A stretch of 22,880 nucleotides of DNA from Chlorokybus atmophyticus. Taxonomy: Eukaryota > Plantae > Mesostigma and Chlorokybus algae. The DNA lies in assembly GCA_009103225.1 (NCBI GenBank), contig RHPI01000385.1, positions 485,092-507,971 on the forward strand, read 5' to 3'. A program made the translations under genes and the position numbers. This document shows positions 2,251-22,880 of the stretch, in pieces (position 1 is the stretch's first letter; each line of letters starts with the position of its first letter). Under the pieces are notes generated by a model. That model did not search any database. It worked only from the letters and a program-made list of their open reading frames with translations, and was not told the origin of the DNA.

Positions 2251-2424
2251 CAAGGTTGCATTGGCAACCATGGGAATGTCTTCCACTATCACCGCTGCTT
2301 GCTGTCCCATGTGTGCCACCTCAAGGGCTGTGTGAGCTGCTTTGATGTCGGCAACACACTTAGCCCACCCCCCAGCCAGATGTCCTCGAAGAACACATGG
2401 CAATCCTGTAACGCGAAGCTTAGC

Positions 2425-3395
2425 TCTAGCAGCCACACCATGCTGTTTTGGTCTATGGCGCGGCCGAACAGCTGGCATTGCTAGCTATTGGTCAGCTATG
2501 ACTTTGTGATACTCTTGGGGAAGAAGGTGGCGCGTTTGCGCTTGCGAGCACAAGGTTCTTCTAGTTTGCCTGCCGCTTCATCGAATATGCCATCGCCACC
2601 ATTGCAAAACAATATGACCCAACTAGGTAGGACACCAAAGTGGGGAGTGCGCGGCGTGGCTGTCCCGGATGGTTGCACTGGTAGGAATTATTGTGATCGT
2701 GACGTGTGACAGGCTGGGCCTTGCGGCCATGGTCAAATATATTATTGACGAAGAGAGGTTGCGTGGCTGCGTGCTGCGCGCGTACTCCTCTGTCATCAGT
2801 TCCTATGTGGGAGCCAAATTTGTCCACTTGGCCACCACGCGACGGGCACGCGAGCCGTGACGTGCTGCGTTCACCTTTAGTGGGTGCCCAAAAATGGAGC
2901 ACTCATGTCAGTAGCTGGAGGCCACTGGTGACACGTGGGGACGCTTGTCGTCCTCCAAGTGCACGTTCTCGATGATGTACCCGAGCGGCCTGGAGATCTA
3001 ATGCGGTTGAAGCAGATGAACGACCCTCATTACGTTAACTCCCCAAACAAACCTGAGTGAGGGTCTGCAAGGCCTTGCCCTTTTTTTGCTTTTACAGTGT
3101 CCTTGACACCGTGCGACTCTCATCCAGCTTTCAGCAAGTCAATGTTATCGAGGGACAGCAAAAGTCCTCTGTGATCGGCCGAATTTTTTTCGGCAATGCC
3201 TTGAGGCTGCCTTGCACACCATGGGCAATTGCTGTGGATAGCGCTCGTGCAGCTGGCGTAGGTGGTGCTTGAGGGCTGTTTGCGCGTGTGGGTTGGGATC
3301 ACAGTAGAATTACTCAATGACCTTGACCTCTGTGTCGAGGACAGCGGCTAAACCACTGCCAATGCCTCCGCACAGCTCCAACACCGTAATGCCTT
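2425..3395 (-). pseudogene. C5 cytosine DNA methyltransferase domain within pol of element A (disabled)
   Basis: Motifs occur in order across frames: I GITVLELCGGIGSG (~3358-3393); II FYCD; IV/V AG*ESH...GQGLADPHSGLFGEL (~3040-3130); VI GYIIENV (2962-2982); VIII VNAARHGSRARRVVAKWTNL (~2815-2875); IX EPCARKRKRATFFP; X LFGRAIDQNSMVWLL (~2425-2470). Confidence 0.85.
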
Positions 3396-3749
3396 GCTGT
3401 CGCCGGAAGGAGTGGAACTCCACCACCCCGGTGGCCACCATGTGTTGATTGTGCGCCTTGTCTTGTCTTTTGTAGTTGTGAAAGCGCGAGGTGATCAGTG
3501 GCTGGGTCAGCAAGAGGTGCGTCCACCCATGCACACCAACGGCGTTTGGCCGGTCTTGCAATGCCACTTCAACCGTGGCATCCTCCTGCTCCTCACTGTA
3601 AGGAATGCCCGTGGGAGAGGAGTCGTTAGTGCGGCAAGGAGCTGCGGCTGCGGCAGTGACTCGGGTGCGATCGCTGTCATGTCTGGTTTATGCAGACTGC
3701 ATGTGGCTACGGCAGCCATTTTGCATTAGACACGCGTGCGTGACACCAG

Positions 3750-4352
3750 CATGAGAGGCAGGAAGTTTTGTACCTCTCTATCATCTTTACTTTAATGTGG
3801 TCAGAACCAAGCCCGTTCTGTCCAGCAATCAAGGCGCATGCCCATAGGGAAGTTGAAGTCTTGCCCTAGCATAAATTGAAAAAGCCAGCGTTGGTGACCA
3901 CATTGCTATATGATCTCTGTAGTGTGGGTTGGGTTAAGCCCTATCAACCGAATGCGAGAAGGCCTCTTTGGTGACCCCAATTACCTTGTCGTGCTGCCTG
4001 TGGCAGTATCCAATACGTACGAACATGGCATCAAGTCCGAGCTGGTGATGCCAGGGGACTGAGTGAGGAAGCGCCCGCTGATAACAATGTGCGCTTCGGT
4101 GTCCAGCATCACACGCTTAAGTGCCAGGCCGATAATAGTTACATGCTTGCCTTGGTTGACGACTATGGCAGCATTGGCGTTGATGCGCAGCCTCTGTATG
4201 CGGGCTGCAAGCATCCGTGCCTCATGTCGCTTAGCTGCGGGTGCTAACCGCATTACAGCCAGAGCTCCTCTATCTGCCGGATTATGAGGATCACCTCCTT
4301 GCCCTCTCCCTCTGCTCAACCGGCCTTTTCGTGGTGGCCAATAAACACGCGG
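3750..4352 (-). pseudogene. Element A aspartic protease (disabled)
   Basis: KRVMLDTEAHIVISG (D-T-G-A-like, G>E), SDLMPCSYVLDTATG, then MLGQDFNFPMGMRLDCWTERAWF after a frameshift. This is a retropepsin pattern. Confidence 0.75.
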
Positions 4353-4849
4353 TGTAACAATTGGGGCCCGACCACTAGGCTATGGTGGTAAAAGACACTA
4401 CCATGAGTGAGGTTTGTCACAATTTATCCCAATTCGTAACATTCCTCCCCAATCTAACCCATGAGTTCCTCATAATCCAATGAGGCACTAGCCCACGTCA
4501 TCGTGTTCGCGACCGTACCACGATCGGTCTGCTCGCGGCCTGTTGGTTCTGGCCCACGAACGATTCAAACCGATCGAACGGCCATCCTCACTACGCGACC
4601 TGCTATCGCACCGCGACCGCTCACGCGGCCTTTGATTGAACTGGCTTAGCGCGCAGGTCGTGATCCCGCGCCCAGCCTAGGGCAAGCCGCCCCAAATGTT
4701 TTTGCCTTGATTTGCCTCAGTCCCCTACGGGAATTGAACCGGAGATGTCAAGCTCCATTGTAACAATTTGAGCCCGACCACTAGGCTATGGTTGTAAAAG
4801 ACACACCATGATGAATGAGATTTGTCACAATTTATCCCAATTCGTAACA
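4353..4849 (-). mobile_element. TRIM-1 (miniature LTR element, 497 bp)
   Basis: Two ~90-bp TG...CA direct repeats (4353-4441, 4759-4849). Minus-strand PPT GGGGAGGAA at 4442-4450. PBS-like TGGAGCTTGA just inside the right repeat. Probable 4-bp TSD GCGG/GTGG. Confidence 0.85.
4730..4788 (-). promoter_or_regulatory. tRNA-type Pol III internal promoter spanning the LTR/PBS junction of TRIM-1
   Basis: A box TAGCCTAGTGG (4788-4778, inside the LTR) and B box GGTTCAATTCC (4740-4730, internal region). Confidence 0.7.
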
Positions 4850-5048: not shown

Positions 5049-5382
5049 TGTAACGGAGTGCTACCTCTATAGAGGTTCCCCGCCCTTATTTAGGATTACA
5101 TAAGGGTCCCAACGGGTATATACAGCCAATTAAGCCGTATTAGGGCCGCTAACCTAATGTTAAGGCCCTAATGTAGTGTTACTTAACTGTAACACTGATA
5201 TCGACGTGAGACATGAGTCTCATGTCGATATCAGCTGTATGGCGGCACTGCTAACGCAGCAGCCGCCATAGCCAGGGCATCTTCTGCTTCGGCAGTGGCC
5301 CTGGCGGCGGCGGTGACGGCGTCGTGGCTGGTGGCGGTGTTGGGGTAGGGGATTAAAGGGGGCGGTAGCACCCCTCCTTACA
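5049..5382 (+). repeat. Element B 5' LTR (334 bp)
   Basis: TGTAACGGAG...CCTCCTTACA. About 5 substitutions versus the 3' LTR. Confidence 0.97.
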
Positions 5383-5383
5383 T

Positions 5384-5395
5384 TGGTATCGGAGC
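5384..5395 (+). promoter_or_regulatory. Primer-binding site of B (initiator-Met type)
   Basis: TGGTATCGGAGC, 1 nt after the LTR; one difference from the canonical plant TGGTATCAGAGC. Confidence 0.9.
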
Positions 5396-5399
5396 ACGG

Positions 5400-5630
5400 G
5401 CGGCAAGGGGCATGTGGGAGGGGCGGCGGCAGGCGGCAGGCGGCAGGGGCGGCGGCAGGCGGCAGGGGCGGCGGCAAGCGGCAGCGACGTTAAACTAGTG
5501 GTAGTTAAAGTGTTTTATGTTTTAACTATAATAGTTAAACGCTGCTGCTGGTGCCTAGCCTAGCCTAGCCTAGCCTAGCTTGCCATGCCATGCATGCCAT
5601 GCCTAGCCTAGCATGCCTGTCCTAGTCTAG
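5400..5630 (+). repeat. Short tandem repeats in the B leader: (GGCGGCAG)n, then (GCCTA)n/(GCCAT)n
   Basis: Directly visible at ~5420-5485 and ~5552-5625. Confidence 0.8.
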
Positions 5631-6213
5631 TTTGTTATTGTGTGAAGGGAGCCGGCCATTCAGGCCTATCCCTGAAGCATTGCATTGCAGCACAACACAT
5701 AGTAAAAATACATTGATTGTATTATATTGTGTGTGTACCACCACGTGGATTCGTGGTGGTGTAAGGGTTTTTCTATTAATTTGGAAATTCCCTTGGGGGG
5801 GGCAGTTCGGTGGCAACATCGACTGTCTCAGTGCCGCCATTTTGAGCGGTGAGGCCGCCAGAATTTTCTGAGCGGCCGATATCAAACTCACCATTCACAA
5901 CTGGTCGATATCGGCCTGTAAGGTCGATTTGACGAGATTTTGGCACCCTGTGTGTCAATCACAGTTGTGAATTGTGCTGGGTTGTACAAAGTGAAAACTT
6001 TGAGAAATCATAACTCGTAAACCGTCGCGTGGATTCGCGCACGGTTTGTTGCAGAGTGAGTGTCTAGTTGAGAGGTGTGTGGAGAGCTCTTTTGGGGCTG
6101 TATACTCCACCGTAACGCCTCAAAACTTGACGAGACAAAATCATTAGATTTTACCTGTATTGCAGTGCACAATCTGAGTACTTGTGCACTTGCTAACGGC
6201 TGTCTTTGGGCAG

Positions 6214-7677
6214 ATGTCTGACCAAGGAGAGGGAGGTGAGAAGTACTTTACCGTCCCTGACTCATCGTCATCATACGAACCATCAAGTGATGACAAAGTG
6301 AGAGACTCGGACACGAGTGAGAGCTACAAGCTCACTGAGAGTGACAAGGAGGAAGCTGCGCAGGATAGCGAAGCTTCTCCCGATCAATCTACTCAGAGTG
6401 GGCCAGCTACAATGGACACACAGTCTGTCATTGGTGGGGCTATTGAGAAGTATGCGCGAGAGCGCAAAGCCTTGATCGATGCTCACCCACAGCTTCGTCA
6501 GGAAGTGTGGGATGCATGGGCACAAAAGGTTCGTGATAGCTATGCAACAGATTTTGCCACTCTCCCTCGCGCGAGCAAGGAAATGGTGATCCGCATGATT
6601 GAGCACGAGTTGACGAACAATGTTCCGCCACTCGTGCGCGGTGATCCGAAGGTGGCTGCTCTGATGGCTGTTTACAATAAGCCTCTCCCTTACCAAGGCA
6701 AGCGAATGGCGTTTGAGACTTTGGCCAACTTGGGAGTGGAAACCTCACAGCGTTGCAAGGACGTGTTCTGGTACTTGGGACCTAACTTGGAAGACAAGTT
6801 GACTGGCCGAGTGCAGTTGACGGCACGCCTCGATGCTATGCAGGCTGAGTTGGTGGCGCTGCGCCAACAGGTGGCGGGTGCTACTTCAGCAGCTGGAGCA
6901 TCAGCGGGGCTGCCGGTTACAGCACTGAACAAGCCTGAGAAGTTCAAGCCCAACGGCAGTGTCAGCATCCATGATTGGGCGGTAACTGTTGAGCACTACT
7001 TGACAGCACTGAAGCGACCAGTTGGCGAGCACATTGCTGTTGCTGAGTTGCTCATGCCATCTGACGCTCTCGCCGAGTGGGCGAGGCAGACAGAGGATGG
7101 TGCGGCCAAGACAGTGGAGGCACTATTCAAGTTCCTTGTGGAGCGCTATGGTGGCATGGATCCAGCTACTCAGGCTCGCAACAAGCTCAACAAGCTGCGA
7201 CAGAATGGCAGGACGGCTTCAGTCTATCTGCAGGAGTTCCAAGCGTTGGTGGGCCGCGTGAACAGTGGCCTCATGCCCATGGACAAGGCTGAGCAGTTTG
7301 AGTTGTACAAGCGCGGCTTGGATGCGCGTGTGCGCGATCAGCTGCAGTACAACACGGCAACGGGACTTCCTTTGGTTCCTGAGGACTTGGCCCAGCTGCA
7401 GAAGCTGAGCGTGTATCTGTACAGTGATGACACGGCGGTGCAGGAAAAGGCACATGTGGCAGCTGCGGCCAAGCCGCACGGGGTGGGAGGGAAGCGTTAC
7501 CCTCAGCCGAGTGCGCACACGGCAAAAAAGGCGAAGACATTCACGCCTCCTACCGGTGGCACATCTGCTGGTGGTGGTACACCCGCTGCGGCTCGCACCT
7601 GTTACGTATGTCACCAGCCGGGTCACATTGCGAAGAACTGCCCCGCCAAGAAGGGCAAGGCCAAGAAGGTTGAATAG
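6214..7677 (+). CDS. gag: Element B Gag (long N-terminal extension, capsid-like region, CCHC zinc knuckle)
   Basis: Open frame with first ATG at 6214. KPEKF, ARNKLNKLRQNGRTASVYLQEF and CYVCHQPGHIAKNC are present; ends in TAG. Confidence 0.92.
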   Translation: MSDQGEGGEKYFTVPDSSSSYEPSSDDKVRDSDTSESYKLTESDKEEAAQDSEASPDQSTQSGPATMDTQSVIGGAIEKYARERKALIDAHPQLRQEVWDAWAQKVRDSYATDFATLPRASKEMVIRMIEHELTNNVPPLVRGDPKVAALMAVYNKPLPYQGKRMAFETLANLGVETSQRCKDVFWYLGPNLEDKLTGRVQLTARLDAMQAELVALRQQVAGATSAAGASAGLPVTALNKPEKFKPNGSVSIHDWAVTVEHYLTALKRPVGEHIAVAELLMPSDALAEWARQTEDGAAKTVEALFKFLVERYGGMDPATQARNKLNKLRQNGRTASVYLQEFQALVGRVNSGLMPMDKAEQFELYKRGLDARVRDQLQYNTATGLPLVPEDLAQLQKLSVYLYSDDTAVQEKAHVAAAAKPHGVGGKRYPQPSAHTAKKAKTFTPPTGGTSAGGGTPAAARTCYVCHQPGHIAKNCPAKKGKAKKVE

Positions 7678-10600
7678 GATTACGCCGTGATTAATGTAGA
7701 TGCGGTTGATAGCCAGTTGCTTGAGATGCAAGCAGCAAGCTGGTTTGATGATCTGTCTCAAGTGCATGTAATGACACATGCATGGCAAGCACATGACAAG
7801 TTGCCACTCTTTGATGTTAAAAAAGTGGAAGAGAATGCTTGTGTGCTGGTACATGTGGAGTTCAACATGCTTACCGGTGTGTTGCATGCATTGACTGAGT
7901 TGCAGAATAAGCACAGAACCTTGAGTATGGTGGTGATGGTGCCAAAGTATCATGGCCCATGGTTAAAACATACTCGGGGAGGGTCTGTGTTGAAGCAATT
8001 CAGCAAGCGTGAAACAGGGACAATACGGTTGTCAGCCATATTGATCAACCCTCGCATTAGTCACGGACTCTTGGCTACGTTTCAAAGACGGGTGGTACCT
8101 GTGTTGTGGACATTTAGTGGCACAATGCAGGGTGTAAACAGTTCGTTCTTAATTGACACTGGTGCAACACACAACTTCGTTGAGGAACAATGGGTTGTAC
8201 GCAACAAGATAGCGTGTAAAACCTCAGCATTTTCAGCTGCCGGTGCGGGGGGTGCGTTGCCAGTGAAAGGGGAAATAAAAATGAAAGTAAAGATTGGTAA
8301 TTATCATGCCACTTTTACTTTCATAGTGGTATCCATCGACATATCAGGTGTTGATGTGGTATTAGGACAGGAATGGCAGGAAAATGTCAAAATGACATTG
8401 GATACTGGCGCACGTTTGTGCACGGTAAAGAAAGGTCGTAAGCGTGTAACATTGTCTGTGAAAGGGTCACATAGCTTGGACCACAAGCAGCCCGACCCTG
8501 CGCTACTCACTGCACTGCAAGTGAAACGTGCGTTACGCAAAAACACACCGGCTTTTCTGGTACACTTAACGTCGTCGGACGACTTTGTGCCGGGAAACAC
8601 AGAAGGTGTTGCAGACATCATTGAGAAGTATCAAGATGTGTTCTCAGATGAATTGCCAGGCTTACCTCCTGATCGAGCTGTCGGACACACAATACCACTA
8701 ATTCCTGACAGTGAACCTCCGTTTCGGCCTATATATAGGCTGAGCCCCCGAGAGAGGGGGGAAATGGAAACTCAAATCAAAGAGTTAATGGAAAAGGGAT
8801 TGATTGAACCGAGTTCTTCACCCTTTGGCGCGCCCATCTTGTTTGTGATGAAAAAGAATGGAAAGCTGCGCATGTGTGTGGATTACCGTGCTTTGAACAA
8901 GATCACGGTAAAGAATCGATACCCGTTGCCCCGGATTGATGATGTGTTTGATAAACTGTCGGGAAATGCGTACTTTAGTACGTTGGACTTGACAAGTGGG
9001 TATCATCAAATCCGGATTCATCCTTCTGATGTTTACAAGACAGCATTCAGAACACCTTCGGGCCATTATCAATACAAAGTGTTACCTTTTGGATTGATTA
9101 ATGCGCCGGCAGTGTTTCAGAAGGAAATGAATAAGATTTTTGGTGGCATACTTGGCAAGTATGTTATGGTTTACTTGGATGACATCATTGTCTTTAGTAA
9201 AACCAAGGAAGAGCATAAGCAGCACTTGGAAGCGGTGTTCGCCTTGCTGCGTACACATCGCTTGTTTGCCAATCTTGCGAAGTGTGACTTCTGCAAGACG
9301 GAGTTGCCATTCTTGGGGCACATTGTGAGCGGTGCGGGTGTGAAACCTGACCCTCGCAAAGTGCAAGTTGTAAAGGATTGGCCTCAACCTAAGAATATCC
9401 ATCAGCTGCGATCATTCTTGGGATTGGCAAACTACTTTCGCAAGTTTATGATGGGGTACTCCACAGTAGTGGTGCCTTTGACAAAACTGTTGCGAAAAGA
9501 TGCTCCATTCTTATGGACAGCTGAACAAGAAGCTGCTATGCAACAGGTGAAGCTAGCTTTGACTTCTGCTCCAGTGTTGGCATTGCCAAACTGGGACAAG
9601 CATTTCACTGTAGTTAGCGATGCGTCCACCCTTGGGTGTGGTGCAGTACTGTTGCAAGATGGCAGACCATGTGCTTATGAGAGTAGGAAGTTCATCCCAG
9701 CAGAGGTGAATTACACTACCACCGAGCAAGAGTTGCTTGGTATAGTACATGCTCTGGAAACATGGCGATGTTACTTGGAGGGGGTTCAGTTCACAGTGGT
9801 GACTGATCATAATCCATTGGTGTATTTCTCAACACAGCAAAACTTGTTACGAAGGCAAGCTCGCTGGAATGAGTTTCTGTCTCGGTTTACCTTTGAGTGG
9901 GTATACCGACCAGGCAGAACCAATGTTGCTGATCCTCTGAATCGTTGTCCATCATTGTTGGCAGCTATGCGTGCGCAATTGCTTGCGATGCGCGGTACAT
10001 TGCCACCGGATGATGAGTTTGTGCAAACTGTTGTGCAAGGGTATGCTTGTGACCCATGGTTCTCGTCAGAAGACAACGTGCAAAAGCTGAGCAAACGAGA
10101 CAACTTGTATTATGTGGGCAGCAGCTTGGTAATACCTGACCATGCTGGATTGCGTGCGAAATGCATAGCTGATGTACACGATCCACCATACGCTGGGCAC
10201 TTTGGCAGTCGCAAGACTGTTAAAGCAGCGCAACAGTTGTATTGGTGGCCATCGTTGCCTGTTGACGTAAAACGGTATGTGGACACGTGTGACAAATGTC
10301 AGCGTGATAAGCCGTTACGTCAGAAACCAGCTGGTTTGCTGCGACCATTGCCTATTCCTGATGGCAAATGGGAAAGTGTGAGTATGGACTTAATTACTGA
10401 GCTCCCAGAGACAGCATTAGGTCACACTGCGGTTGCAGTTTTTGTGGATCGTTTGACAAAAATGGTCCACATTGTCCCTTGTCGCACGGAGATAGGCTCC
10501 CGTGAGTTGGCGATGGTTTTTGTCGCGTCTGTGTTTAAGTTGCATGGCTTGCCCCGCAACTTTGTGTCAGATCGCGATCCGCGATTTGTGGCTCAGTTTT

Positions 10601-10932
10601 GGAAGTCGCTCTGCAGCTTCTTACACATTCAGCAGAACATGAGCACTGCTTACCATCCACAGACGGATGGTCAGACAGAACGCGCCAATCAAGTGATTGA
10701 GGAAACCATCAGGCATTATGTGAGCCCGAATCAGAGTGATTGGGATATTTATCTCCCAATGGCTGAGTTTGCGATCAATAATGCATGGCAAGAGAGTGTG
10801 CAGGAAACTCCGTTCTTCTTGAATTACGGAATGCATCCACTGAGTCCTGCGAACATTAAGTTGCCCGCTACTGACGTGACTCGCGTACCTGCAGCGCGCG
10901 AGATGGCTTTTCGGCCATGCAGGATAGGTTAG
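7678..10932 (+). CDS. pol: Element B Pol: MTase-like domain, protease, RT, RNase H, integrase (in frame with gag)
   Basis: LIDTGATHNF; LRMCVDYRALN; VYLDDIIVFS; VVSDAS...ELLGIVHAL...TDHNPL; HDPPYAGH...CDKC; SMDLIT, SDRDPRF, GQTERANQ. Frameshift near 10910. Confidence 0.95.
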   Translation, partial: DYAVINVDAVDSQLLEMQAASWFDDLSQVHVMTHAWQAHDKLPLFDVKKVEENACVLVHVEFNMLTGVLHALTELQNKHRTLSMVVMVPKYHGPWLKHTRGGSVLKQFSKRETGTIRLSAILINPRISHGLLATFQRRVVPVLWTFSGTMQGVNSSFLIDTGATHNFVEEQWVVRNKIACKTSAFSAAGAGGALPVKGEIKMKVKIGNYHATFTFIVVSIDISGVDVVLGQEWQENVKMTLDTGARLCTVKKGRKRVTLSVKGSHSLDHKQPDPALLTALQVKRALRKNTPAFLVHLTSSDDFVPGNTEGVADIIEKYQDVFSDELPGLPPDRAVGHTIPLIPDSEPPFRPIYRLSPRERGEMETQIKELMEKGLIEPSSSPFGAPILFVMKKNGKLRMCVDYRALNKITVKNRYPLPRIDDVFDKLSGNAYFSTLDLTSGYHQIRIHPSDVYKTAFRTPSGHYQYKVLPFGLINAPAVFQKEMNKIFGGILGKYVMVYLDDIIVFSKTKEEHKQHLEAVFALLRTHRLFANLAKCDFCKTELPFLGHIVSGAGVKPDPRKVQVVKDWPQPKNIHQLRSFLGLANYFRKFMMGYSTVVVPLTKLLRKDAPFLWTAEQEAAMQQVKLALTSAPVLALPNWDKHFTVVSDASTLGCGAVLLQDGRPCAYESRKFIPAEVNYTTTEQELLGIVHALETWRCYLEGVQFTVVTDHNPLVYFSTQQNLLRRQARWNEFLSRFTFEWVYRPGRTNVADPLNRCPSLLAAMRAQLLAMRGTLPPDDEFVQTVVQGYACDPWFSSEDNVQKLSKRDNLYYVGSSLVIPDHAGLRAKCIADVHDPPYAGHFGSRKTVKAAQQLYWWPSLPVDVKRYVDTCDKCQRDKPLRQKPAGLLRPLPIPDGKWESVSMDLITELPETALGHTAVAVFVDRLTKMVHIVPCRTEIGSRELAMVFVASVFKLHGLPRNFVSDRDPRFVAQFWKSLCSFLHIQQNMSTAYHPQTDGQTERANQVIEETIRHYVSPNQSDWDIYLPMAEFAINNAWQESVQETPFFLNYGMHPLSPANIKLPATDVTRVPAAREMAFRPCRIG

Positions 10933-11458
10933 CGTTGGCAAAAGACTGTCTGCGCGCAGCGCAAGACAGACAAAAAGCCCAAGCTGATGCGCATCGTAGA
11001 GAGGCCACTGGCCTCTCTACGATGTGGGCTGTTCGGTGCTTTTAAGTACCAAAAACGTATCCATCAAGGGAGTGGGTACCCGCAAGTTTTTCCCTCGCTG
11101 GATAGGCCCTTTCAAAGTGACTGATCGGGTCGGCACTCACGCGTATCGTTTGGACTTGCCAAAGTCGATACGCATTCACAATGTGTTTCATGTGAGTGTA
11201 CTGAAACCGTATCGTTCGGACGGTCGGGTTCAACCTCCTCCACCCCCCGTTGCAGTGGATGGCGACGATACTTTCGAGTATGAGGTGGAAGCAATCCTGA
11301 GTCACCGTAAGCCTCGACGCGGACGCGCGCCGTCTTACTTGGTGATATGAAAAGGGTATGGTGTTGAGCACAACACGTGGGAGCCCGAAAGGAATCTTAC
11401 CAACTGCCAAGAGATTCTTCGGGGGTACTGGAGTGCTGTGTCCACACGCGGACGGTAA
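10911..11458 (+). pseudogene. Element B integrase C-terminus (GPY/F-type motif) and chromodomain, disrupted
   Basis: AMQDRLALAKDCLRAAQDRQK, then RWIGPFKV, then YEVEAILSHR...YLVI*KGYGVEHNTWEPERNL. Two frameshifts (~10910, 11010-11017) and TGG>TGA at 11348-11350. Confidence 0.92.
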
Positions 11459-11568
11459 AAGGGTGCTGGCAGACATCTTTACCGCTTCGGCCCTGGTTCT
11501 CTTTCTGCTTTGGTTCTCGGTGCTCATAGTGGGGCTTTGCTAACCCTTCAATGAGGACATTGAAACCT

Positions 11569-11581
11569 AAGTGGGGGGGAA
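11569..11581 (+). promoter_or_regulatory. Polypurine tract of B
   Basis: AAGTGGGGGGGAA abutting the 3' LTR. Confidence 0.9.
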
Positions 11582-11930
11582 TGTAACGGAGTGCTACCTC
11601 TATAGAGGTTCCCCGCCCTTATTTAGGATTAAATAAGGGTCCCAACGGGTATATACAGCCAATTAAGCCGTATTAGGGCCGCTAACCTAGTGTTAAGGCC
11701 CTAATGTAGTGTTACTTAATTGTAACACTGATATCGACATGAGACATGAGTCTCATGTCGATATCAGCTGTATGGCGGCACTGCTAACGCAGCAGCCGCC
11801 ATAGCCAGGGCATCTTCTGCCAGGGCATCTTCTGCTTCGGCAGTTGCCCTGGCGGCGGCGGTGACGGCGTCGTGGCTGGTGGCGGTGTTGGGGTAGGGGA
11901 TTAAAGGGGGCGGTAGCACCCCTCCTTACA
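11582..11930 (+). repeat. Element B 3' LTR (349 bp)
   Basis: Copy of the 5' LTR plus a 15-bp tandem duplication (CCAGGGCATCTTCTG). Confidence 0.97.
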
Positions 11931-11935
11931 GCATC

Positions 11936-12498
11936 CCTGACCAATGTCCCTTCCCACGTGGCCGTCAGCTCTGTGTCCACATCGGTCCAGTGGTGGTATT
12001 GCGGCATGGGCTCCTATTACACTGCGTGTAGCAGTTGTCGCCGCATGTCGTTGGTGATGGTGGGGACCCGCGAGAGCCCTGCCATGTAGGCATCCCATTT
12101 CCCTTGTAACACACCTACATCAAGCACCGTCATGGCGCGTGCGCGTATGGTGCATTGGAGGTTGGTCTGCTGCACATGTAGCGCATGAGCAATGGTGGTG
12201 CGCCGACGCTGTCGTGCGGCTTCTACTCCTGGCAGCCGTAGAATTCCTTATTGCACTCCCTCCAGGGTGTTCGGAGCAGTTGTGGCAGCTTTATCGCATG
12301 CTTGTCGCAGCGAGCGGAGGAATGCCCCCAACCATGATGCTTTGTTGCCAAAGGCAAATATCATATGATGGGGACAACGAGGAGATTCGCAATGAGCCAT
12401 GTCACCAGCCATGCTTGGATTGCGCTGCCCTCTCGCATCCCTATCATCTGTCATCGTGCACTGCCCTCCGGCCTGTGCGACATGGTTGCTTGTCGTTG
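11936..12498 (-). pseudogene. Element A gag-like region (degenerate)
   Basis: One long frame with sparse stops (WLGAFLRSLRQAC...GVQ*GILRLPG...QGKWDAYMAGLSRVPTITNDMRRQLL) that continues across the B insertion site. Gag identity rests on position, not on a recognised motif. Confidence 0.5.
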
Positions 12499-13317
12499 GG
12501 TAAATTCACCTAATTTCGGAAGGTTGTTAGCCTGTAAATTTCCTACAGTGCTTTTTTGGCGGTAGAGTATGTATGTTTTTTGAAGCTGAGGGTTTTAAGT
12601 ACTCAGCGGTACTTATTTTTATTTTTGGACAAATACTGCCCCGTCGGTAGTGCGCAAAAGTAGGGTGGTTTTGGGGTTTCCGCAAAAGCGGAGTTGACCC
12701 CAATTTTTAAAGTACCTCACTACCTTTTGAGCTATTTGACGGCTCTCCCAGGGTAGTAAATGGCTAATTCTTTATAGTTAAGACCGGTGGCGACCTTATA
12801 CATCACTATTGTGGCCAACACCAACATTTTAAGCGGCCCAACTTGGATATAACAATCATACCACCGCGGTGCCCATAACCATGTGCAAGGGCACTTACTA
12901 AGTGCCCCTGCACATGGTCCCTATAGTATAGGAAGAATCAGAATCACTTGAAGTGGATTAACTTTGGGTGTACCGCCGCGAATAATGTGAAACTTGAAAA
13001 CTTACTCTTACATAAATGCAGGATTTCGTAGCGCTCAACCCCGCCCTAGTTGGTGAAGTATTGCAAATGTTACTAATAAATTAAGCGTTGTGAAAAGTAA
13101 GATTACAAATGTGAATTACAAGTTGACATACACTCATAATTATGGTGCTAGCGCAATACATGGTCGTTTAAGCCGGTCTTAAATTTGTTGAATAGCTCTT
13201 AATGAACTCTATCATCCCTATAAATTACACTATAATCGGACGTTGCATGCGCCGTTCAGCTCACCTCAAGTACCCATCTATGAAATTAGGGTCAACTCCG
13301 ATCTAGGTGAAGTTACC
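12499..13317. mobile_element. Non-autonomous TIR DNA element (819 bp, AT-rich; possibly PIF-Harbinger or Zator-like)
   Basis: Ends GGTAAATTCACCTA and (reverse complement) GGTAACTTCACCTA, 13/14 identical. Flanks TTG/TAG could be a mutated 3-bp TSD. The subterminal motif CGGAGTTGACCC recurs at ~12689 and inverted at ~13289. No ORF. Confidence 0.65.
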
Positions 13318-13339
13318 TAGGAGCGCGCCGCGGAGTTGT

Positions 13340-14204
13340 TGTAACGTGGGACACACACTTACCTGCTCGTGTATGTCACATACTTGTGCACAGGCACAAG
13401 AACTTCTTCACAACATACCATGGTGCAGCACCTTGTTAAAGGAATGACCAGCACCGCAACGGGATGGAGAGGATGCACAACAAACCCTCCACTCAGCTCA
13501 CACACACTCAAGCACACCCCACTCACGTGCAAGGCTGCTACGGACACTACAACCCACTTGGGATGAGAGCCAGAGCCCCTTGAACAACTGAACTAGGCAC
13601 CCCACACACAAGAGTCGAGTATGCACATGCTGAGCTGCCTCAACACTTGTTGAGGCCGTTCATATACCCCCTCTTTGCTGCTGTCCAACCTAGAACAACC
13701 ATGTCCAAGGCTACTTGCCTTGTCATGGCTGCGTTGACCTATACTCATGCCTAGGAGCTGCCACATCAGCCCTAGGGCATCTTGTCAACGCCCAAGACTG
13801 ATCACACATCAGCCTCGGACATCGTGAACGCCCAAGGCTGGTCACATCAGTCTAGGACCTCATACATATGCATACATATGCGAACATATGCGAACATATG
13901 CATACACATGCATACATCACTCATATCCGCACATATGAACTCATATGCGGACACATGCATGCATATGCAACCATATGCATATACATGCGGACATATGACA
14001 CCGACCAGCTCTGTGCTTGCTAGTAGACAGTGCCTATGTGTAGCTACAACGCCCTTGCACACTAAGTGCACAGAAACAAACTTCATGAGCACATATGCCA
14101 AGTACTACACAACTTGACTATACGGGATCCTCACTTAGTTCTTCCTACTTACCACATAAGTAAGGAACATGAGAGTGACTTTTGCCAGCCCTTTGGGCGT
14201 GACA
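13340..14204 (-). repeat. Element C 3' LTR (865 bp)
   Basis: Near-identical to 19676-20537. Contains a CATATG-rich array (~13860-13995) and a ~40-bp degenerate tandem repeat (~13760-13860). Confidence 0.97.
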
Positions 14205-14217
14205 TATCTCCCCACTT
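14205..14217 (-). promoter_or_regulatory. Polypurine tract of C
   Basis: AAGTGGGGAGATA on the minus strand, abutting the 3' LTR. Confidence 0.85.
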
Positions 14218-14452
14218 GCATTGCAACTCCCATGTTGCAAATGATGGAGCTCTTTGCCCCGCACAATGATTGCCAGCCAGGTTGGCCAAGCCTGCTGAAC
14301 CACCGCACACTACGCGTAAAACAAAATGCAAGTCGCGAGAGTGACAACCAACTCTGATACTAAGTACCAGTGCGCGCGTATTGGCATGTCACATGGAAGA
14401 GAAAGTTGCACGTGTTTGTACAACACCTATGTTGCAACCCGAGCACATGCTC

Positions 14453-17400
14453 TCAAGTGGCATCTGTGCATTTAAGCTCACTCTCAAGCTCACCCAACTT
14501 GTCAGCACAGTTTGTCAAGTTGGAAATAGGCTCCCAGGTGTTATGCTCTTCGCCATAACCAAGCCACTTGACAAGATATTCAGTGCGGAAGGTCTTCTTG
14601 TACTTCCGGAACCTCTTGCCAACAACTGCCTCAACCTCATACTCGAGGTCTCCCTCTACCTCCACATGGAGGTGGAGGAGGCTGCACCGGGCCATCACTT
14701 CAGTATGGCTTCAACAGTGCCTCATGGAACACACTGTGGATTCGCATGCTCTTTGGCAATTCAATCTTAAGGGCACGGTCACCAACAGCTGCTGTAATTG
14801 TGCACGGCCCTAGCCACCTGGGTAGAAGCTTGCGCACACCACTAGTCTTGAGTCTAATGTTCTTAGAACTCAGCAAGACCTTGTCTCCTATTTTGAGATC
14901 AGCACCAGGCTTGCGCTGCCGATCAGCATATTTTTGCCGATCTTGGGCTGCTCTCAAGCAGTCCTTGGCACTTGCCAATGCAGCATGCATCTGCTCTGTA
15001 AAGTCTCAAGCCGTTGGCACTTTGCTAAATGGCTAAACTTGCAGAGACATTGGTGTCAACGGATGACGACCATAGTTGAGAAAGAACGGAGTGCTGTGCG
15101 TTGACTCTTGCCATGCATTGTTTACAGCAAACTCGGCCAATGCAAGGTGCACATCCCAGTCATCAAACCTGGGTGATGTGTAGTGGCGCAGCACGTCTAC
15201 AAGCACCTGGTTTGCACGCTCCGTCTGTCCATCACTCTGTGGATGGTAAGCAGTGCTCAAGCTCTGCTTAGTTCCCAAGTATTGGCACACAGCCTGCCAG
15301 AACTGACTGGTAAACCTGGGATCACGGTCTGATACCAACTCTTTGGGTACACCGTGCAGTTTGAACACCGTGTTCACAAAAGCATATGCAAACTCTTGCG
15401 CGCTCACATCTGTGCGACATGGCTCAAACCGGACCATCTTGGTCAACCGATCAACAAAGACAATGATGGCATCATGCCCTTGTTTTGTCTCCCATTAATA
15501 GCTTGGGATAGCCAACGGCTTAAGTAGCCCTGCTGGCTTGCGGTGTGAGGCCTTGTCACGTTGACAAGTGTCACAACTTTGCACATACTTGGTTGCATCA
15601 GCAACCAATGTCGGCCACCAGTACTGTCGCTGCAGTAACTTGATGGTCTTGATCATGCCCATGTCACCGCTGTATACAGCATTGTGTGCCTCAAACAAGC
15701 ATTCTTGCCTAAGTCCGTGTGCATCTGGCACAATCAACTTGCCCTCGCGGTACTACAACCCTTTGTGACAAATGATCTTGTCGTCTCCTTGCTTAAGCAG
15801 CTCGGCAAACCAGTTGTCAAGTGCATAAGCCCGTGGTAGACGTGCCACAATGTCTTCAATATCAACAGCCAGTGGGTCCTCCTCACTTGCATTGGAAGCT
15901 ACCATTGCTGCATCACCGCTAGCTGCCTCACTTGCAACTAGCAACTCACATGTTGCTGGCTGCGCTGATGTACCAGCACCTGTGTCATCAAACTGTGCCC
16001 ACCCTTGACTGCGTGCACGTGCACGTGTCGTTGCTGCCAATAACAAAGGCGAGCGACTTAAGGGATCTGCCACATTCACCCTACCTGAACGATACACCCA
16101 AGTTAAGTTGAAACGCGACAAAAACTCAGCCCACCTTGCTTGTCTTCGGGACAAGGTTGGTTGGGTCCGAAAGAAAACAAGTGGGTTGTGATCGGTAATC
16201 ATCGTGAACCCACCTTCCACCCCCTCCGGATAGCAGCGCCACTCCTGTAGCGCATGGACCATTCCAAACAACTCTTGCTCAGTTGTGGTATAGTTTCTCT
16301 CAGTAGGAGAGAACTTCTTGCTCAAGTACGCAAGAGGGTGTCCTGAAGCAACACAGCTCACGTGCCATTTAGAGATGCATCGCTAATCACCTCAAAGGGC
16401 TTGGTGAAGTCTGGCAACTGTAACACAGGTGTTGTCACCAGAGCCTCTTTGATAGAATAAAAGGCACCTGTTGCCCGTGTCCCCACCTCCACACAACCTT
16501 GTTACGTAGCAGTTTTGTGAGAGGAGCAACTCGCGATGAGTATCCAAGGATGTACTTCCGGAATTAATTGCTTAGCCCCAAGAATGCTCGCAACTCATGC
16601 ACGTTCTTGGGTACGGGCCATTCTTGGACCTTAGCAACCTTCTTGGAGTCAGGGCGCACGCCCTCCTTGCTTACAATGTGCCCCAAGAACACAAATTCCG
16701 TCCTCCCAAACTCACACCTGGGCATGTACGCAAAGAACTTGTTTGCACGCAGCGTTTCAAAAACGTCACGCACATGTGTAACATGTGACTCAGGGTCTTT
16801 ACTGAAGACCATGATGTCATCGAAATACACAAGTACTGTCTTCCCAATCAGCTTGTGAAACACACGGTTCATCATAGCTTGAAAGGTAGCTGGCGCATTC
16901 GTCAGCCCAAATGGCAACTTTGTACTAAAAGTGTCCCACAGGCGTTTTAAACGCTGTCTTGGGCACATCTTCCGGTGTGATCCGGATCTGGTGGTACCCA
17001 CTGATCAAGTTTAAGGAGGTGAACACTGAGGCCCCGCTCAGTTAATCAAGCAAATCATCTATCCTCGGCAACGGATACCTGTTCTTAATGGTAAGCTTGT
17101 TTAAGGCCCTATAGTTCACGCACATTCGCAGCCTGCCGTCCTTCTTAGGTACGAACAGAATGGGTGCTTCGAAGGGAGAGCTACTTGGCTCAATCAATCC
17201 CTTCGCAAGAAAGGCCTTGATTTGCCTCTTCATGTCCGCAAACTCAGCTGCACTCAACTTATACACAGGCCTAAATGGAGGTTGTCCTCTTGATACGAGA
17301 GGGATAGTGTGCCACACTTCCCGCTCAAGAGGCAACTCAGGCAACTCAGCTTGAAACACATAAAAATCCTCATGCAGCAGAGCGTCAAGTGCATTGTCCT

Positions 17401-18369
17401 GTGAGCTGCTAACAGTCTCACCGGGTGGAGTGGTGGCCTCATCGCTGGCAAGTGGCTTGACCAGAGGACCAGAAGAGGTTCAGCACCTCTCCGCACAGCT
17501 CTTTTCACCTGCATGGCACTCAACAATAGAGGGAACACGTCACTTGATGTGTCACCGTGAGTGGAGGGCATGACATCACACCCTTCAACTCTCAGGGTCA
17601 CACGCCCTCGCCCTTTGCGCACGCTGCAAAGGCCAGTGTCTGCATCTGTGCGCAGGCCATTAGCACGCTCCCAGCGAGCACCAAGAATGACATCAACACC
17701 TGGTACTTCAACTGGCACAACCAAGAACCTCAGTTGAGCATGATAGCCTTGCACACGCAAAGACAGATGCACGGACCCTTTGACTGGGATCTCATGCTCA
17801 TCAAGTGAGGTCACTGCCTCACTTGCCTTCTCGACATGAATGCCAAGACGCCGCACCAGAGACTCACTTATAAAGTTCTTCGGTGTACCAGTATCTATCT
17901 TCAGAGTAGCTGGTATGCGTGCAACTGACGCCTTGAACAACCATGTAAGGTCCAAGTGATTTCCCCGGTGGAGAACAGGCGGGTCATACATGACACGCAC
18001 ATAGCACCCTATGCCAGTTTGTGACTTGTCAATCTCCTGAATGACTTGCATACCCTTTATAAAGGACGACCATGGTCCTCTATACGCGGGCACAATGACA
18101 CATGCACTTGTGTTATGCGGACTCTTGCTCTTGCACTCAACATAGTGCTTGAGCACCGTTGACAACTTGTCAAAGGGCGCATTGAGCAGCACTTGCTTGC
18201 TCACACAGTCATGCATCAGAAATTTGGGGTCGATAGGCACACCCACATCATTTTCCCACACAGCAACATCGCATGTCAACAGGGAAGCATGTGGATTGCC
18301 AACAGTCATCAAGCAACTTACAGAGTTGGCAACAGGGCTACTAGTAGAACAGCTCTTCACCTCGAGTTC
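14453..18369 (-). pseudogene. pol: Element C pol: MTase-like domain, protease, RT, RNase H, integrase, chromodomain; many stops and frameshifts
   Basis: KIDTGTPKNF; [11 protein letters not shown]; VYFDDIMVFS; ELFGMVHAL..TDHNPL; EAHNAVYSGD...CDTC; SDRDPRF; GQTERANQ; RWLGPC; YEVEAVVGKR...YLVKWLGYGEEHNTWEP. Confidence 0.93.
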
Positions 18370-19359
18370 CTATGCGACAGGCTTGTCGTTGGAGGGGTTG
18401 GGGCAGTTCGCCACGCGGTGGCCTTTCTCCCTGCACTTGAGACACAGTCCGGCATTGAAGCGTGCATTCCTCAGCTTCACGCTAACTCCGGGGATGCTGG
18501 TAGCACGCTTCTTGTTGACTGGCTGAAAGGGCTGCTTGCCCTTGCCGTCTGGGCGGTCGCGCTTGCGACTGTTGTTGCCACTGCCACTTCCCACAGCGGG
18601 AGTGGTCGAGCTCGAGGGCTGGTTGGCAACAATGGCAAACTTCCATGCCTGGTTGATCATGCGCTGGCTGTTGTCATACTGCACAGCCGTGCGCTTCATC
18701 AAGTCATAGTCAGCATGCGTGAAGGACTCCAGGCCCTCCTTGAAGGTCAATTGCTTTGCCGTATCCTCAGGCAAAGCCGCCCAGTACTTGTCCATCTTCT
18801 CTGCCTCTGACAAGGGCATGTCGGGGCCAACTTCAGCACACACCGACTCGAAGCAGACAGTGAAGTCCTCAATGGACTGATTGGGCTTGACTTTCAAGCG
18901 TCTCAACTTGTCACGCGCCTTCTGTGACGGGTTCACACCCACGTAGGCCTACAACATAGCAGTCTCAAACACGTCAAGGCTTGCGACATCCTTGCCAGCA
19001 GCCTCAAGATGTGGGGAAGCCCCTTCCCACATGCGGGCAGCACTTCCCCGCAAGTACGATGCCAAAAGCGACACTGCTTTGGCCTCAAGCCCAGGCAATA
19101 CCTCAGCGACATGCAACACACGCTTACAACCAGAAAGCCAGTCACGCACGGCAACACCAAGATCCTTGCCCTTCCCATCATGGGCACCGGAAAAGAACTC
19201 CAAGCGTGGCATCATCTTGTGGGTGTTTGCGGCTGCCATCTTGGCTAGCTGCTGCTCGTGTTGCTCCTTCATGGAGGCATTGGCCGTGACCATGGCTTGC
19301 ACCTGGTTTTGCAGCTCCATCACTTGGGCCGCGAGTGCGTTGGCGTTCGGATCAGTCAT
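18370..19359 (-). pseudogene. gag: Element C gag with one premature in-frame TAG (18949-18951)
   Basis: Coiled-coil start MTDPNANALAAQVMELQ, YLRGSAARMW, ARDKLRRLKV...IEDFTVCFE, and knuckle CLKCREKGHRVANC. ORFs 18949..19359 and 18370..18942 are in the same frame. Confidence 0.9.
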
Positions 19360-19662
19360 TGTTGAAGGAAAATCTGCTCGTGCATAAGCACGTAATGAGT
19401 GTAGTGTTCAACACACACACGCGCGCACAAGTCCAGCTGTGCACGCAGCAAAACGCAGCGAAAATGCACTCAACTAGTGCGCAAATCAGCGTGAATACAA
19501 CCCACACCGTGCATGCAAGTGTGCGTGCAGCTGGTGCAACCAACTACATGCACAATCAGCGTGCAAACACTGCCATGTAGCGCGTGCAAGCAAAGAATGC
19601 AACACACGCACCGTGTAGCAAGTGTACAAGCTGATGGGCAAGCATGCAAGGCTTGAAAACAA

Positions 19663-19674
19663 GCTCCGAGTCCA
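19663..19674 (-). promoter_or_regulatory. PBS of C (variant iMet type)
   Basis: TGGACTCGGAGC, 1 nt after the 5' LTR. Confidence 0.75.
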
Positions 19675-19675
19675 A

Positions 19676-20537
19676 TGTAACGTGGGACACACACTTACCT
19701 GCTCGTGTATGTCACATACTTGTGCACAGGCACAAGAACTTCTTCACAACATACCATGGTGCAGCACCTTGTTAAAGGAATGACCAGCACCGCAACGGGA
19801 TGGAGAGGATGCACAACAAACCCTCCACTCAGCTCACACACACTCAAGCACACCCCACTCACGTGCAAGGCTGCTACGGACACTACAACCCACTTGGGAT
19901 GAGAGGGAGAGCCCCTTAAACAACTGAACTAGGCACCCCACACACAAGAGTCGAGTATGCACATGCTGAGCTGCCTCACTTGTTGAGGCCGTTCATATAC
20001 CCCCTCTTTGCTTCCCTCCGACCTAGAACAACCATGTCCAAGGCTACTTGCCTTGTCATGGCTGCGTTGACCTATACTCATGCCTAGGAGCTGCCACATC
20101 AGCCCTAGGGCATCTTGTCAACGCCCAAGACTGATCACACATCAGCCTCGGACATCGTGAACGCCCAAGGCTGGTCACATCAGTCTAGGACCTCATACAT
20201 ATGCATACATATGCGAACATATGCGAACATATGCATACACATGCATACATCACTCATATCCGCACATATGAACTCATATGCGGACACATGCATGCATATG
20301 CAACCATATGCATATACATGCGGACATATGACACCGACCAGCTCTGTGCTTGCTAGTAGACAGTGCCTATGTGTAGCTACAACGCCCTTGCACACTAAGT
20401 GCACAGAAACCAACTTTATGAGCACATATGCCAAGTACTACACAACTTGACTATACGGGATCCTCACTTAGTTCTTCCTACTTACCACATAAGTAAGGAA
20501 CATGAGAGTGACTTTTGCCAGCCCTTTGGGCGTGACA
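19676..20537 (-). repeat. Element C 5' LTR (862 bp)
   Basis: About 10 substitutions and one 3-bp indel versus the 3' LTR. Confidence 0.97.
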
Positions 20538-20542
20538 GTTGT

Positions 20543-21868
20543 TGTTCCCTTACCATACCAGCTCCTCCTTGTTGTGTGGTGTCCTCTTACAGAGTGAGGT
20601 AACCTCGCCTGGCATCACACTGCTTTATGGGCATATTCTCAACCTAGGAAGGCAGCAGCGAGGCAATTTACCCCCCTTCTTTTGTTGAGGATATGCCAAA
20701 ATCAGTGCCAACGCCCTCCCTTGGCCAGCAGCAGTTGCTTGCCCTTGCGGAGTGATCGTGGTTGTTGAAAGTGGCATCAATGCGAGTGCACTCGAGGGAC
20801 AGGCGACGCCAGATGCCTCTGCAGGCTGGCTAACGTACGCCTGCCGTCGTGAGTCCATTTGTGCCACTTAATCTAGTCAATAGCAGTATGCTTGTTCGAG
20901 GGCCGAGATTCGCTCTTGTCGGCTCCTTTGGACACGCCCACGAAGTACTGGTCAGTTCCTAGCGGTATGCCTGATGTGGTCATTACAAGGTCTTGCACCG
21001 AGCGACGCTGGAGTCCGAGCGGGTCCAATGGTGAGGGCTCGAAGTCAGTCTGCTGAGCGGGCATCGGCTGCCGTGATCAAGTGGGTGCCTCTTGCAGCCT
21101 TGCATGCAATGCCAAGAACAGCTGGATTACCCACTCAACACAGCAGGTTGCCGATAGGTGACCCCGAAGAGGGGGTTGCGCATCTCTGGAGCAATGCCTG
21201 CAATAATCTCATCCTCCAGCTGTTGTTGTGTGGACTCCGAGAGCATGTGGTACTCTGGAGGTGGTAAGGGGAGAATGCGATCATCCCATGCTACTCGCGT
21301 GGTGCGTTGCCCCCCGGACCGTACGCAATAGCTGTTTGTTCGATGTCGCGTAGAATGGATGCCCAAGCGCGCTCCGCTTGGTGTCCACGCAGTACTTGTT
21401 TCGTCTCGTCAAGGTGTGGTGGGGCTGCACGCAGTCCTAATGGTGCTGTGGTAGTGGCGACTGCGGAGGGTGTGGCAACATCAACGACAGCAATGGTGGT
21501 GGCACCCGCAACAGTTGTGGTGACAGAGGTTGCTGCTGTGAGTGAAGCGGCAGTTGTGGCCGGTGCAGAGGCTTTAGTTGTAGCAAGGGTGGTGCCTTCA
21601 CCACCGATGGGTTCAACAGCCATGGCTGCAGCAGTATCATGCTTTCCATTTTTGGGGCCAATGCGGTGCCAGGGGTATCCGCACTTGCTGCACCTGTTGG
21701 CGGTGTCGTCAACGGTGTCGTCCCAACAATAGTTGTGGCTGCCGAGGCAGCACCACTTGTGGCTTTCAAAAATGCCGCTGTTAATGACACGCCAGCTTTT
21801 CTACGCACCCGCCTTGTCGACTGCACACGCGATGGCGAAGGAGTGTCCCTCTCCCGTTTTGATGCCAT
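20543..21868 (-). pseudogene. Degenerate Ala/Thr-rich ORF, probably the 5' part of element A gag
   Basis: Chain of minus-strand ORF pieces starting MASKRERDTPSPSR, in the same orientation and position as expected for A. No recognised motif. Confidence 0.4.
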
Positions 21869-22289: not shown

Positions 22290-22880
22290 TGTAACGGGAA
22301 GGTACATTAAATTACCACAAATCGACCATAAAAGTACCAAGTCTTTTGTGGTCGAGTGGGCTGTGACATTGGTCATCGGAGCTTGAGACCCGGGTTCGAT
22401 TCCTGCCTTGCACACGAATTCCGCGGTCGTTGTTTCTCGATCCAATAACATCGTAAATGGTCACTTCATGAGTGCCATCATCGATGGGTCGCGACTTGCC
22501 TAATGGCAGTCGCGCCGAACTGACCAGTTCAGTCGGCGCGGCAGGGCGCGACCTGCCTATCGCGGCGACGCGACCTGTGGGGCCGGCAGCGGCGCGCTAT
22601 GCGCGCGCTGACCGGTATGGGCCTAAATTGGCCGGTCCTTGGACGGTGGGGCCGGTGACCGACCTTAACAAACCCCTTGGGTAACTCCCCAGCTGATGGC
22701 CGCCAGCTGCCGGGGACGTCAGCGTTCTTAAGTGGGGGGGAATGTAACGGGAAGGTACATTAAATTACCACAAATCGACCATAAAAGCACCAAGTCTTTT
22801 GTGGTCGAGTGGGCTGTGACATTGGTCATCGGAGCTTGAGACCCGGGTTCGATTCCTGCCTTGCACACGAATTCCGCGGT
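22290..22880 (+). mobile_element. TRIM-2: tandem array of a 453-bp miniature LTR element
   Basis: 79-bp LTRs at 22290-22368 and 22743-22821 (1 mismatch), each followed by TTGGTCATCGGAGC and the same internal sequence. PPT AAGTGGGGGGGAA at 22730-22742. Confidence 0.9.
22349..22403 (+). promoter_or_regulatory. tRNA-type Pol III internal promoter (A box plus B box) spanning the LTR/PBS junction of TRIM-2
   Basis: A box TGGTCGAGTGG (22349-22359) and B box GGTTCGATTCC (22393-22403) start 44 nt apart, as in tRNA genes. Repeated in the next unit from 22802. Confidence 0.75.

Follow-up and report, generated by a model that had tools for sequence, protein, structure and literature searches.

A divergent Dam-derived domain at the start of Pol in a decayed chromovirus of Chlorokybus atmophyticus

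A stretch of 22,880 nucleotides from the alga Chlorokybus atmophyticus (assembly GCA_009103225.1, contig RHPI01000385.1, positions 485,092 to 507,971; hereafter the window, in whose own coordinates all positions are given) holds at least two chromovirus-type retrotransposons with long terminal repeats (LTRs), called here elements A and C. In element C, about 145 residues stand between the end of Gag and the protease. Our reading, to which we assign a probability of roughly three in four, is that they form the first Pol domain of a DAM-chromovirus: a class-I methyltransferase module of the kind seen in phage Dam, in the DIRS1 methyltransferase (MT) and in PCIF1, present in C as a dead relic copy and occurring in its family in two states, with and without the catalytic signature. 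That the stretch is a Dam-derived domain we regard as firm. The kind is already described, in a preprint only (Fernandez-Moreno et al., 22 May 2026, bioRxiv 10.64898/2026.05.21.726589), and C is a divergent new member that goes undetected by a screen with hidden Markov models (HMMs).

The domain ahead of the protease and its relatives

The domain spans Pol residues ~9-130 (17971..18336, minus strand), as placed by phmmer, MAFFT and AlphaFold2. Its core, residues 45-130 (17971..18228, minus strand), is the part that is statistically supported by hhalign and folded with confidence by pLDDT. An original prediction, made from the letters of the sequence, had quoted a run of residues here and, where the catalytic motif of a methyltransferase would stand, the tetrad N-A-P-F; translation of the minus strand reproduces both exactly, the tetrad at 18172..18183. 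The interval then proposed, 17977-18285, corresponds to residues 26-128 of the frame that opens just past the gag stop. Some 120 of the ~145 residues belong to the domain and the remainder to a linker, the Pfam match to the protease beginning at residue 146.

Residues 1-145 of C were compared by phmmer with a library of 1.84 billion representative proteins. The search returned 192 proteins at E<=1e-3, 18 of them at E<=1e-10, the best at 2.1e-16. Against 120 pol relatives of element A, phmmer matched the domain of C to the pre-protease region of 51 (E down to 1e-16), among which are relatives with a Pfam Dam match. Word-indexed protein searches found nothing for the 145 residues of C alone, nor for residues 1-145 of A within pol; this reflects the index and the length window rather than absence, since the full HMMER search gave the 192 matches. 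When C was aligned by hhalign to a family profile built without C and A, the probability was 99.7% and E was 8e-27, over residues 45-130 only. Alignments A2-A4 were made from short relatives; an alignment with full-length polyproteins (A1) misplaced the last 15 residues of C and was dropped. By these comparisons, the domain of C and the domain that precedes the protease in many related chromoviruses are homologues.

The link to Dam itself is transitive: C matches the relatives P0121 (E 2.1e-16) and P0122 (E 2.0e-14) in phmmer, and these match the Pfam Dam family PF05869 on the same stretch. They score 30.5 and 39.5 bits, respectively (the range for P0121, P0122 and P0173 is 30.5-39.5), against a curated cut-off of 28.1 bits. 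Six other relatives, all of them full-length chromovirus polyproteins (P0033, P0034, P0045, P0057, P0065 and P0119), have a PF05869 match just ahead of the protease, at 27.5-31.3 bits. In the domain-scale alignment A2, 25 of the 55 members match PF05869 (best 5.9e-10), passing or approaching the cut-off; two of the 55 match Pfam PCIF1_WW. The phage N6-adenine methyltransferase model TIGR01712 also finds P0121 and P0122 (E ~1e-6 to 4e-8), far under its equivalog cut-off of 97.05 bits. The relatives cover only positions ~17-115 of the 165-169 positions of the Dam and TIGR01712 profiles, tetrad included. Partial alignment to the prokaryotic domain has likewise been reported for eukaryotic DAMs (Fernandez-Moreno et al., 2026). 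In this transitive form, with the family fold described below, the proposal that a Ty3/gypsy chromovirus carries an adenine methyltransferase module of the Dam type (PF05869-like) holds.

The AlphaFold2 model of the domain of C, made with the family alignment, has a pLDDT of 78.8 and a pTM of 0.71. Confidence is uneven: pLDDT exceeds 89 for residues 51-130 and is low for residues 1-44. The core has the order strand-helix-strand-helix-strand-strand. The top-ranked matches of the model in the PDB are mostly S-adenosylmethionine (SAM)-dependent methyltransferases, chiefly adenine-N6 enzymes (KsgA, PCIF1, Erm, Dim1, M.BceJIV), and its named matches in BFVD are mostly methyltransferases as well, phage N6-adenine methyltransferases included. 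PCIF1-WW proteins of giant viruses (Tetraselmis virus 1, Cafeteria roenbergensis virus and Bodo saltans virus) are also among the BFVD neighbors, with weak E-values. The fold is clearer in P0173, a relative with the canonical tetrad, whose model reaches a pLDDT of 89. Its best Foldseek match in the PDB is PCIF1 (E 5e-7, probability 1.00, TMq 0.55; 15-17% identity over ~160 columns), followed by KsgA, ZCCHC4, METTL16 and M.EcoKI; all seven of its PDB matches at E<=1e-3 are methyltransferases. At the level of fold this agrees with the earlier placement of the DIRS1 domain in the PCIF1 clade (Iyer, Zhang, Aravind, PMC4738411). C has no Pfam PCIF1_WW match, and its likeness to PCIF1 is in fold only. 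As modeled, the family fold is a compact class-I methyltransferase, of which C would retain the C-terminal two-thirds. The N-terminal half of the domain of C appears eroded, residues 45-130 being the supported part.

Two states of the catalytic signature

The residues most conserved in the family (89-98% per column) are all present in C: H72, Y73, K77, P81, T84, S85, A86 and P91. Of the catalytic sites, C keeps the Asp of the first strand and the N-A-P-F tetrad. The first motif pointed out by the original prediction (residues ~28-40), aligned by MAFFT to the Thr/Asp columns of the family, has no statistical support of its own. The family also has a conserved loop bearing an Asn linked to the tetrad; C has none of its nine columns, a loss that speaks against activity of this copy. 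Deletion of the loop as in C is shared by only 4 of 93 relatives with a canonical tetrad.

The original prediction had made conservation of the N-x-P-F and V-P positions among family copies a test of its claim. The V-P position is indeed kept (P in 95% of relatives). The tetrad fared less well: the N-x-P-aromatic form is found in only about half of the relatives, and in fewer than half of the 203 that could be aligned. In the tetrad columns of these 203, N-P-P-F occurs 54 times, N-A-P-F, the second commonest form, 27 times, and N-P-P-Y seven times, the rest being mixed. N-A-P-F is present in nine long open polyproteins.

The variation is not scattered evenly over the domain. Among the 170 relatives in which the N-terminal half is present, 93 have the canonical tetrad and 77 do not. 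The first-strand Asp is found in 94% of the former vs. 44% of the latter (p 6e-13), and the loop Asn in 85% vs. 22% (p 4e-17). Retention of the eight core residues is practically the same in either group (7.5 of 8 in canonical and 7.4 of 8 in non-canonical relatives). The non-canonical group makes up 24 of the 60 polyproteins of at least 1100 residues. On a rough tree of the core, which rests on ~60 columns, the state changes at least 34 times, against 66 +/- 4 when the labels are shuffled, which suggests many independent changes of state. By this count, Asp, loop Asn and tetrad co-vary, and the relatives split in two states. Members that keep all three sites have the signature that a functional adenine-N6 methyltransferase would be expected to show. 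In members that lack all three, the intact core would point to some other role than catalysis, for instance binding or scaffolding. For about half of the family, in other words, the co-variation argues in favor of catalysis; for the rest it argues for a second role. The split bears on whether the job of the domain is methylation at all.

Element A of the same window provides an example of the second state. At the start of its pol lies a degenerate homologue of the domain, located by hhalign at 7837..8010 on the plus strand (the whole domain being ~7687-8091). The first 145 Pol residues of A align with the family profile at 91.7% probability (E 7.8e-7) over residues 51-108, and a BLASTP comparison of C with A finds 33% identity across 249 residues, protease included (E 8e-39). 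Where C has N-A-P-F, A has H-V-E-F, and the Asp and the loop Asn are lost as well. The domain of A gives no Dam match in Pfam or NCBIfam (at E<=10 and E<=1, respectively). By these comparisons the homologue in A is still more divergent than that in C, and it appears to be a methyltransferase-derived domain that has been retained without the catalytic signature.

Structure, expression and condition of the elements

Element C is a complete chromovirus LTR retrotransposon (13340..20537, minus strand), delimited by self-BLASTN, its LTRs and a target-site duplication. In the orientation of the element, the 5' LTR is at 19676..20537 and the 3' LTR at 13340..14204, both on the minus strand. The pair aligns over 865 bp at 98.6% identity, with nine substitutions and three indel columns, and the ends are TG...CA. 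Identical 5-mers, GTTGT, lie outside both ends (13335-13339 and 20538-20542), as expected of a 5-bp target-site duplication. A likely primer-binding site adjoins the 5' LTR (19661..19675, minus strand), and a similar string occupies the same place in element A; a tRNA search of the window found none, so there was none to compare with it. The purine-rich tract that adjoins the 3' LTR (14205..14219, minus strand) is likely the polypurine tract, and A has a similar one.

All genes of C are read from the minus strand. The gag gene (18370..19359) has one in-frame stop and carries a zinc knuckle at 18397-18444, which is matched weakly by Pfam zf-CCHC (16 bits). The pol gene (14453..18369) is treated as one broken gene on the basis of tblastn against relatives. 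Behind the Dam-derived domain comes the aspartic protease (17659..17925, residues 146-234; Asp_protease_2 30.6 bits, RVP_2 26.6 bits), in whose translation the D-T-G triplet is present. The reverse transcriptase domain (16672..17152) is spread over more than one frame, with RVT_1 matching two pieces, and RNase H (16110..16340) is a partial match to RT_RNaseH (79.6 bits). The integrase (15240..15716) consists of a zinc-binding part at 15549-15716 (Integrase_H2C2, 66.6 bits) and part of the catalytic core at 15240-15401 (rve, 31.1 bits). It is followed by the C-terminal SH3 domain (14703-14888; SH3_Tf2-1, 53.9 bits) and a chromodomain (14495-14641; Chromo, 65.3 bits). The 5' to 3' order is, then, gag, Dam-derived domain, protease, reverse transcriptase, RNase H, integrase (zinc, core, SH3) and chromodomain, and C is therefore a chromovirus. 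The proposed location of the domain, between Gag and protease in such an element, is borne out by the zinc knuckle on one side and the enzymatic domains and chromodomain on the other. Membership of C in DIRS was considered and rejected: the integrase is of the DDE type (H2C2, rve), the LTRs are direct, and the target-site duplication is 5 bp long.

Comparison of pol with seven relatives by tblastn indicates ~4-5 frame changes and ~6-12 in-frame stops. The stretch from the gag stop through the protease is free of these breaks, its 237 codons holding no stop. Element A (5049..11930, plus strand; LTRs at 5049-5382 and 11582-11930; target-site duplication GCATC) has a similar LTR substitution divergence (5/349), yet it is far more open: its gag (6184-7677, plus strand) is uninterrupted, and an open frame of 1081 codons starts at 7687 in its pol, which has at least one frame change toward the 3' end. 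The stops and frame changes of C are many for an LTR substitution divergence of ~1%. C is probably a copy of a source that was itself defective, or else its LTRs have been homogenized.

How the domain is made can be read, with some confidence, from the junction of gag and pol. The stop codon of gag is UAG, with a G after it, in C (18370-18372), in A (7675-7677) and in the relative L002 (1621-1623), and pol continues in frame. In the relative L001, pol overlaps gag in another frame. The UAG-G junction suggests programmed read-through of the stop codon. Because the Dam-derived domain is the first domain of Pol, it is made only as Gag-Pol, as had been predicted. In working relatives, synthesis of the domain would thus await read-through of the UAG (or a frameshift), and the domain would enter the particle in small amounts as the N-terminal part of Pol within Gag-Pol. 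Being translated first past a leaky gag stop, it would have the timing and the amount of its production fixed.

Ten open reading frames of the flanks (within 1-4319, 12139-12513 and 21307-21868) gave no Pfam match. Two pairs of direct repeats were noted outside both elements. One (22290-22427 and 22743-22880) is 138 bp long, 99% identical, spaced by 453 bp and cut by the end of the window; the other (4353-4441 and 4759-4849) is ~90 bp long, 91% identical and spaced by ~406 bp.

The module is not confined to one place or one superfamily. Three Ty1/copia polyproteins, P0237, P0239 and P0245, carry a PF05869 Dam domain (34, 48.9 and 29.4 bits, respectively). They are laid out as a copia-type gag with its zinc knuckle, a protease barrel and an integrase, followed by RVT_2. 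As in the chromoviruses, the Dam domain occupies the junction of the Gag zinc knuckle with the protease. Neither copia nor Ty1 is mentioned anywhere in the preprint (Fernandez-Moreno et al., 2026), and a search of the literature turned up no report of carriage by Ty1/copia elements. The shared junction suggests that the module travels as a cassette from one LTR superfamily to another. In P0176, a gypsy-type polyprotein of 1369 residues with protease, reverse transcriptase and RNase H, the match to the domain of C is at 1272-1332, close to the C-terminal end instead of ahead of the protease. The place of the module thus varies among LTR elements.

Rival readings and known systems

A number of results count against reading the stretch as we do. 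C has no match to PF05869 even at E<=10, so the profile search that the original prediction had called for came out negative; nor does it match any NCBIfam model of the kind at E<=1, TIGR01712 included, which leaves it with no match to any methyltransferase model in Pfam or NCBIfam. Searching PDB sequences with the family alignment found, apart from PCIF1 at E 0.1, only relatives of the protease, DDI1 among them. The structural comparison that had also been proposed gave a mixed answer. The kinds of proteins at the top of the list are the expected ones, but the scores of the model of C are poor (best E 0.04 in the PDB and 1.7e-3 in BFVD, none at E<=1e-3 in either). A metagenome scan for close copies of the domain gave 72 pattern matches, none of which was confirmed, and no copies of the same family as C were found by which a family-wide loss of the loop could be separated from a private one. 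Moreover, the two-state reading is based on database proteins, some of which may be decayed copies. C taken by itself, with neither a profile nor a structural match at E<=1e-3, could pass for an ordinary spacer between Gag and protease in which N-A-P-F arose by chance. We consider this next to impossible, and rejected it, given the hhalign result with a family in which 25 of 55 members score above or near the Dam cut-off, the phmmer E of 2e-16 among 1.84 billion proteins, and the preponderance of methyltransferases, particularly adenine-N6 ones, at the top of the structural matches. If the domain is accepted, it might be a working DNA adenine-N6 methyltransferase that marks the cDNA of the element with N6-methyladenine (6mA) in the particle. 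The Asp and the tetrad are retained in C, N-A-P-F is a recurrent form (in 27 of 203 relatives and in nine long open polyproteins), and the stretch from the domain through the protease has no stop. DAM-LTR copies, moreover, carry more 6mA than other LTR elements in ichthyosporeans and Euglena (Fernandez-Moreno et al., 2026). Against this stand the absent loop with its co-varying Asn, a deletion so rare among canonical relatives, and the low confidence of the model in the N-terminal half. With gag and pol both broken, C can make no particle, and the sole published assay of relatives, by expression in dam-deficient E. coli, gave no 6mA (Fernandez-Moreno et al., 2026). We think it very improbable that C encodes such an enzyme. 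Activity of the C copy is doubtful because the loop is lost and pol is broken; the copy is likely an inactive relic and most likely does nothing today.

What the domain does in other members is a separate matter. Those with the intact signature could methylate RNA rather than DNA, for example the capped transcript or the genomic RNA of the element, as PCIF1 does its substrate. The closest solved fold is that of PCIF1, a cap-specific adenosine methyltransferase, which the family profile also finds, weakly, among PDB sequences; two of the 55 members of alignment A2 match PCIF1_WW; DIRS1 domains have been placed in the PCIF1 clade (PMC4738411); and the negative result in E. coli concerned 6mA in DNA. 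However, the profiles that the relatives match in Pfam and NCBIfam are those of phage DNA N6-adenine methyltransferases, the WW and helical domains of PCIF1 are absent, the 6mA enrichment of the preprint is on DNA, and similarity of fold does not fix the substrate. An RNA methyltransferase is on balance improbable. A better case can be made for a pseudo-enzyme, in A, probably in C and in about half of the relatives, that would bind RNA or cDNA, help in the shaping or cleavage of Gag-Pol, or mimic PCIF1. The core is conserved equally with or without the signature, which is missing from 24 of 60 long open polyproteins; in A the domain persists in an open frame of 1081 codons with all three sites gone; and the rough tree suggests many independent losses. 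A role of this sort was proposed for the DIRS1 domain, judged to be probably inactive and perhaps an RNA binder or a PCIF1 mimic (Iyer, Zhang, Aravind, PMC4738411). On the other hand, the co-variation of the three sites argues that catalysis matters in the other half of the family, open frames in database proteins do not prove live elements, and the tree draws on few columns. As an account of the whole we find the pseudo-enzyme plausible, though we would not bet on it. Somewhat more speculative is a composite of these ideas, in which a large share of the lineage, A and perhaps C included, keeps the Dam module without its signature to bind or to serve as a scaffold within Gag-Pol, intact members may act on RNA, and the module passes between LTR superfamilies as a cassette.

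We prefer the view set out at the start, that of a DAM-chromovirus family in two states with C as a relic. Members with an intact signature would be working adenine-N6 methyltransferases whose substrate could be cDNA, an RNA:DNA hybrid or RNA; in members without it, the domain would be kept for binding or scaffolding. The dead copy in C has no biological weight of its own. More generally, 6mA is a mark of active genes in many unicellular eukaryotes, and retrotransposons with an adenine methyltransferase of their own could write the mark or exploit it, an idea first raised by the preprint (Fernandez-Moreno et al., 2026).

The closest known system is the DAM-chromovirus clade. The original prediction knew of no characterized Ty3/gypsy example, and in this it has been overtaken by the preprint, which reports DAM domains in non-DIRS LTR retrotransposons, derives them from DIRS, and includes a 'Chlorophyta DAM-chromovirus-like clade' (Fernandez-Moreno et al., 2026). 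Like C, these are Ty3/gypsy elements that have a chromodomain and whose polyprotein includes a Dam-type domain. Among named organisms, the closest pol relatives in our searches belong to the green algae Haematococcus, Chromochloris and Closterium, and the five-stranded sheet with flanking helices described for the clade matches the compact fold modeled here. There are differences, however. The clade was screened by hmmsearch at E<=1e-5; neither C nor A gives a Dam match, and both would have been missed by such a screen for that reason. The catalytic pocket, emphasized in the preprint as preserved, has been lost in about half of the relatives collected here; C is without the conserved loop, and A without the whole catalytic signature.

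The DIRS1 MT domain is of the same family according to both papers (Fernandez-Moreno et al., 2026; PMC4738411). Unlike DIRS1, C has LTRs, a target-site duplication, a DDE integrase and a chromodomain, and no tyrosine recombinase; its domain sits ahead of the protease at the start of Pol. With respect to phage Dam (PF05869/TIGR01712), the relatives of C match the first ~60% of the profile at 26-49 bits, and C itself does not match. PCIF1/CAPAM provides the best solved structural match of the family (through P0173), the model of C reaching it only at E 0.04; the module of C differs in having neither the WW nor the helical domain, and ~130 residues in place of a chain of ~470-490. Seen against these systems, Dam-derived domains extend well under the detection limit of HMM screens, and both elements of the window are cases in point.

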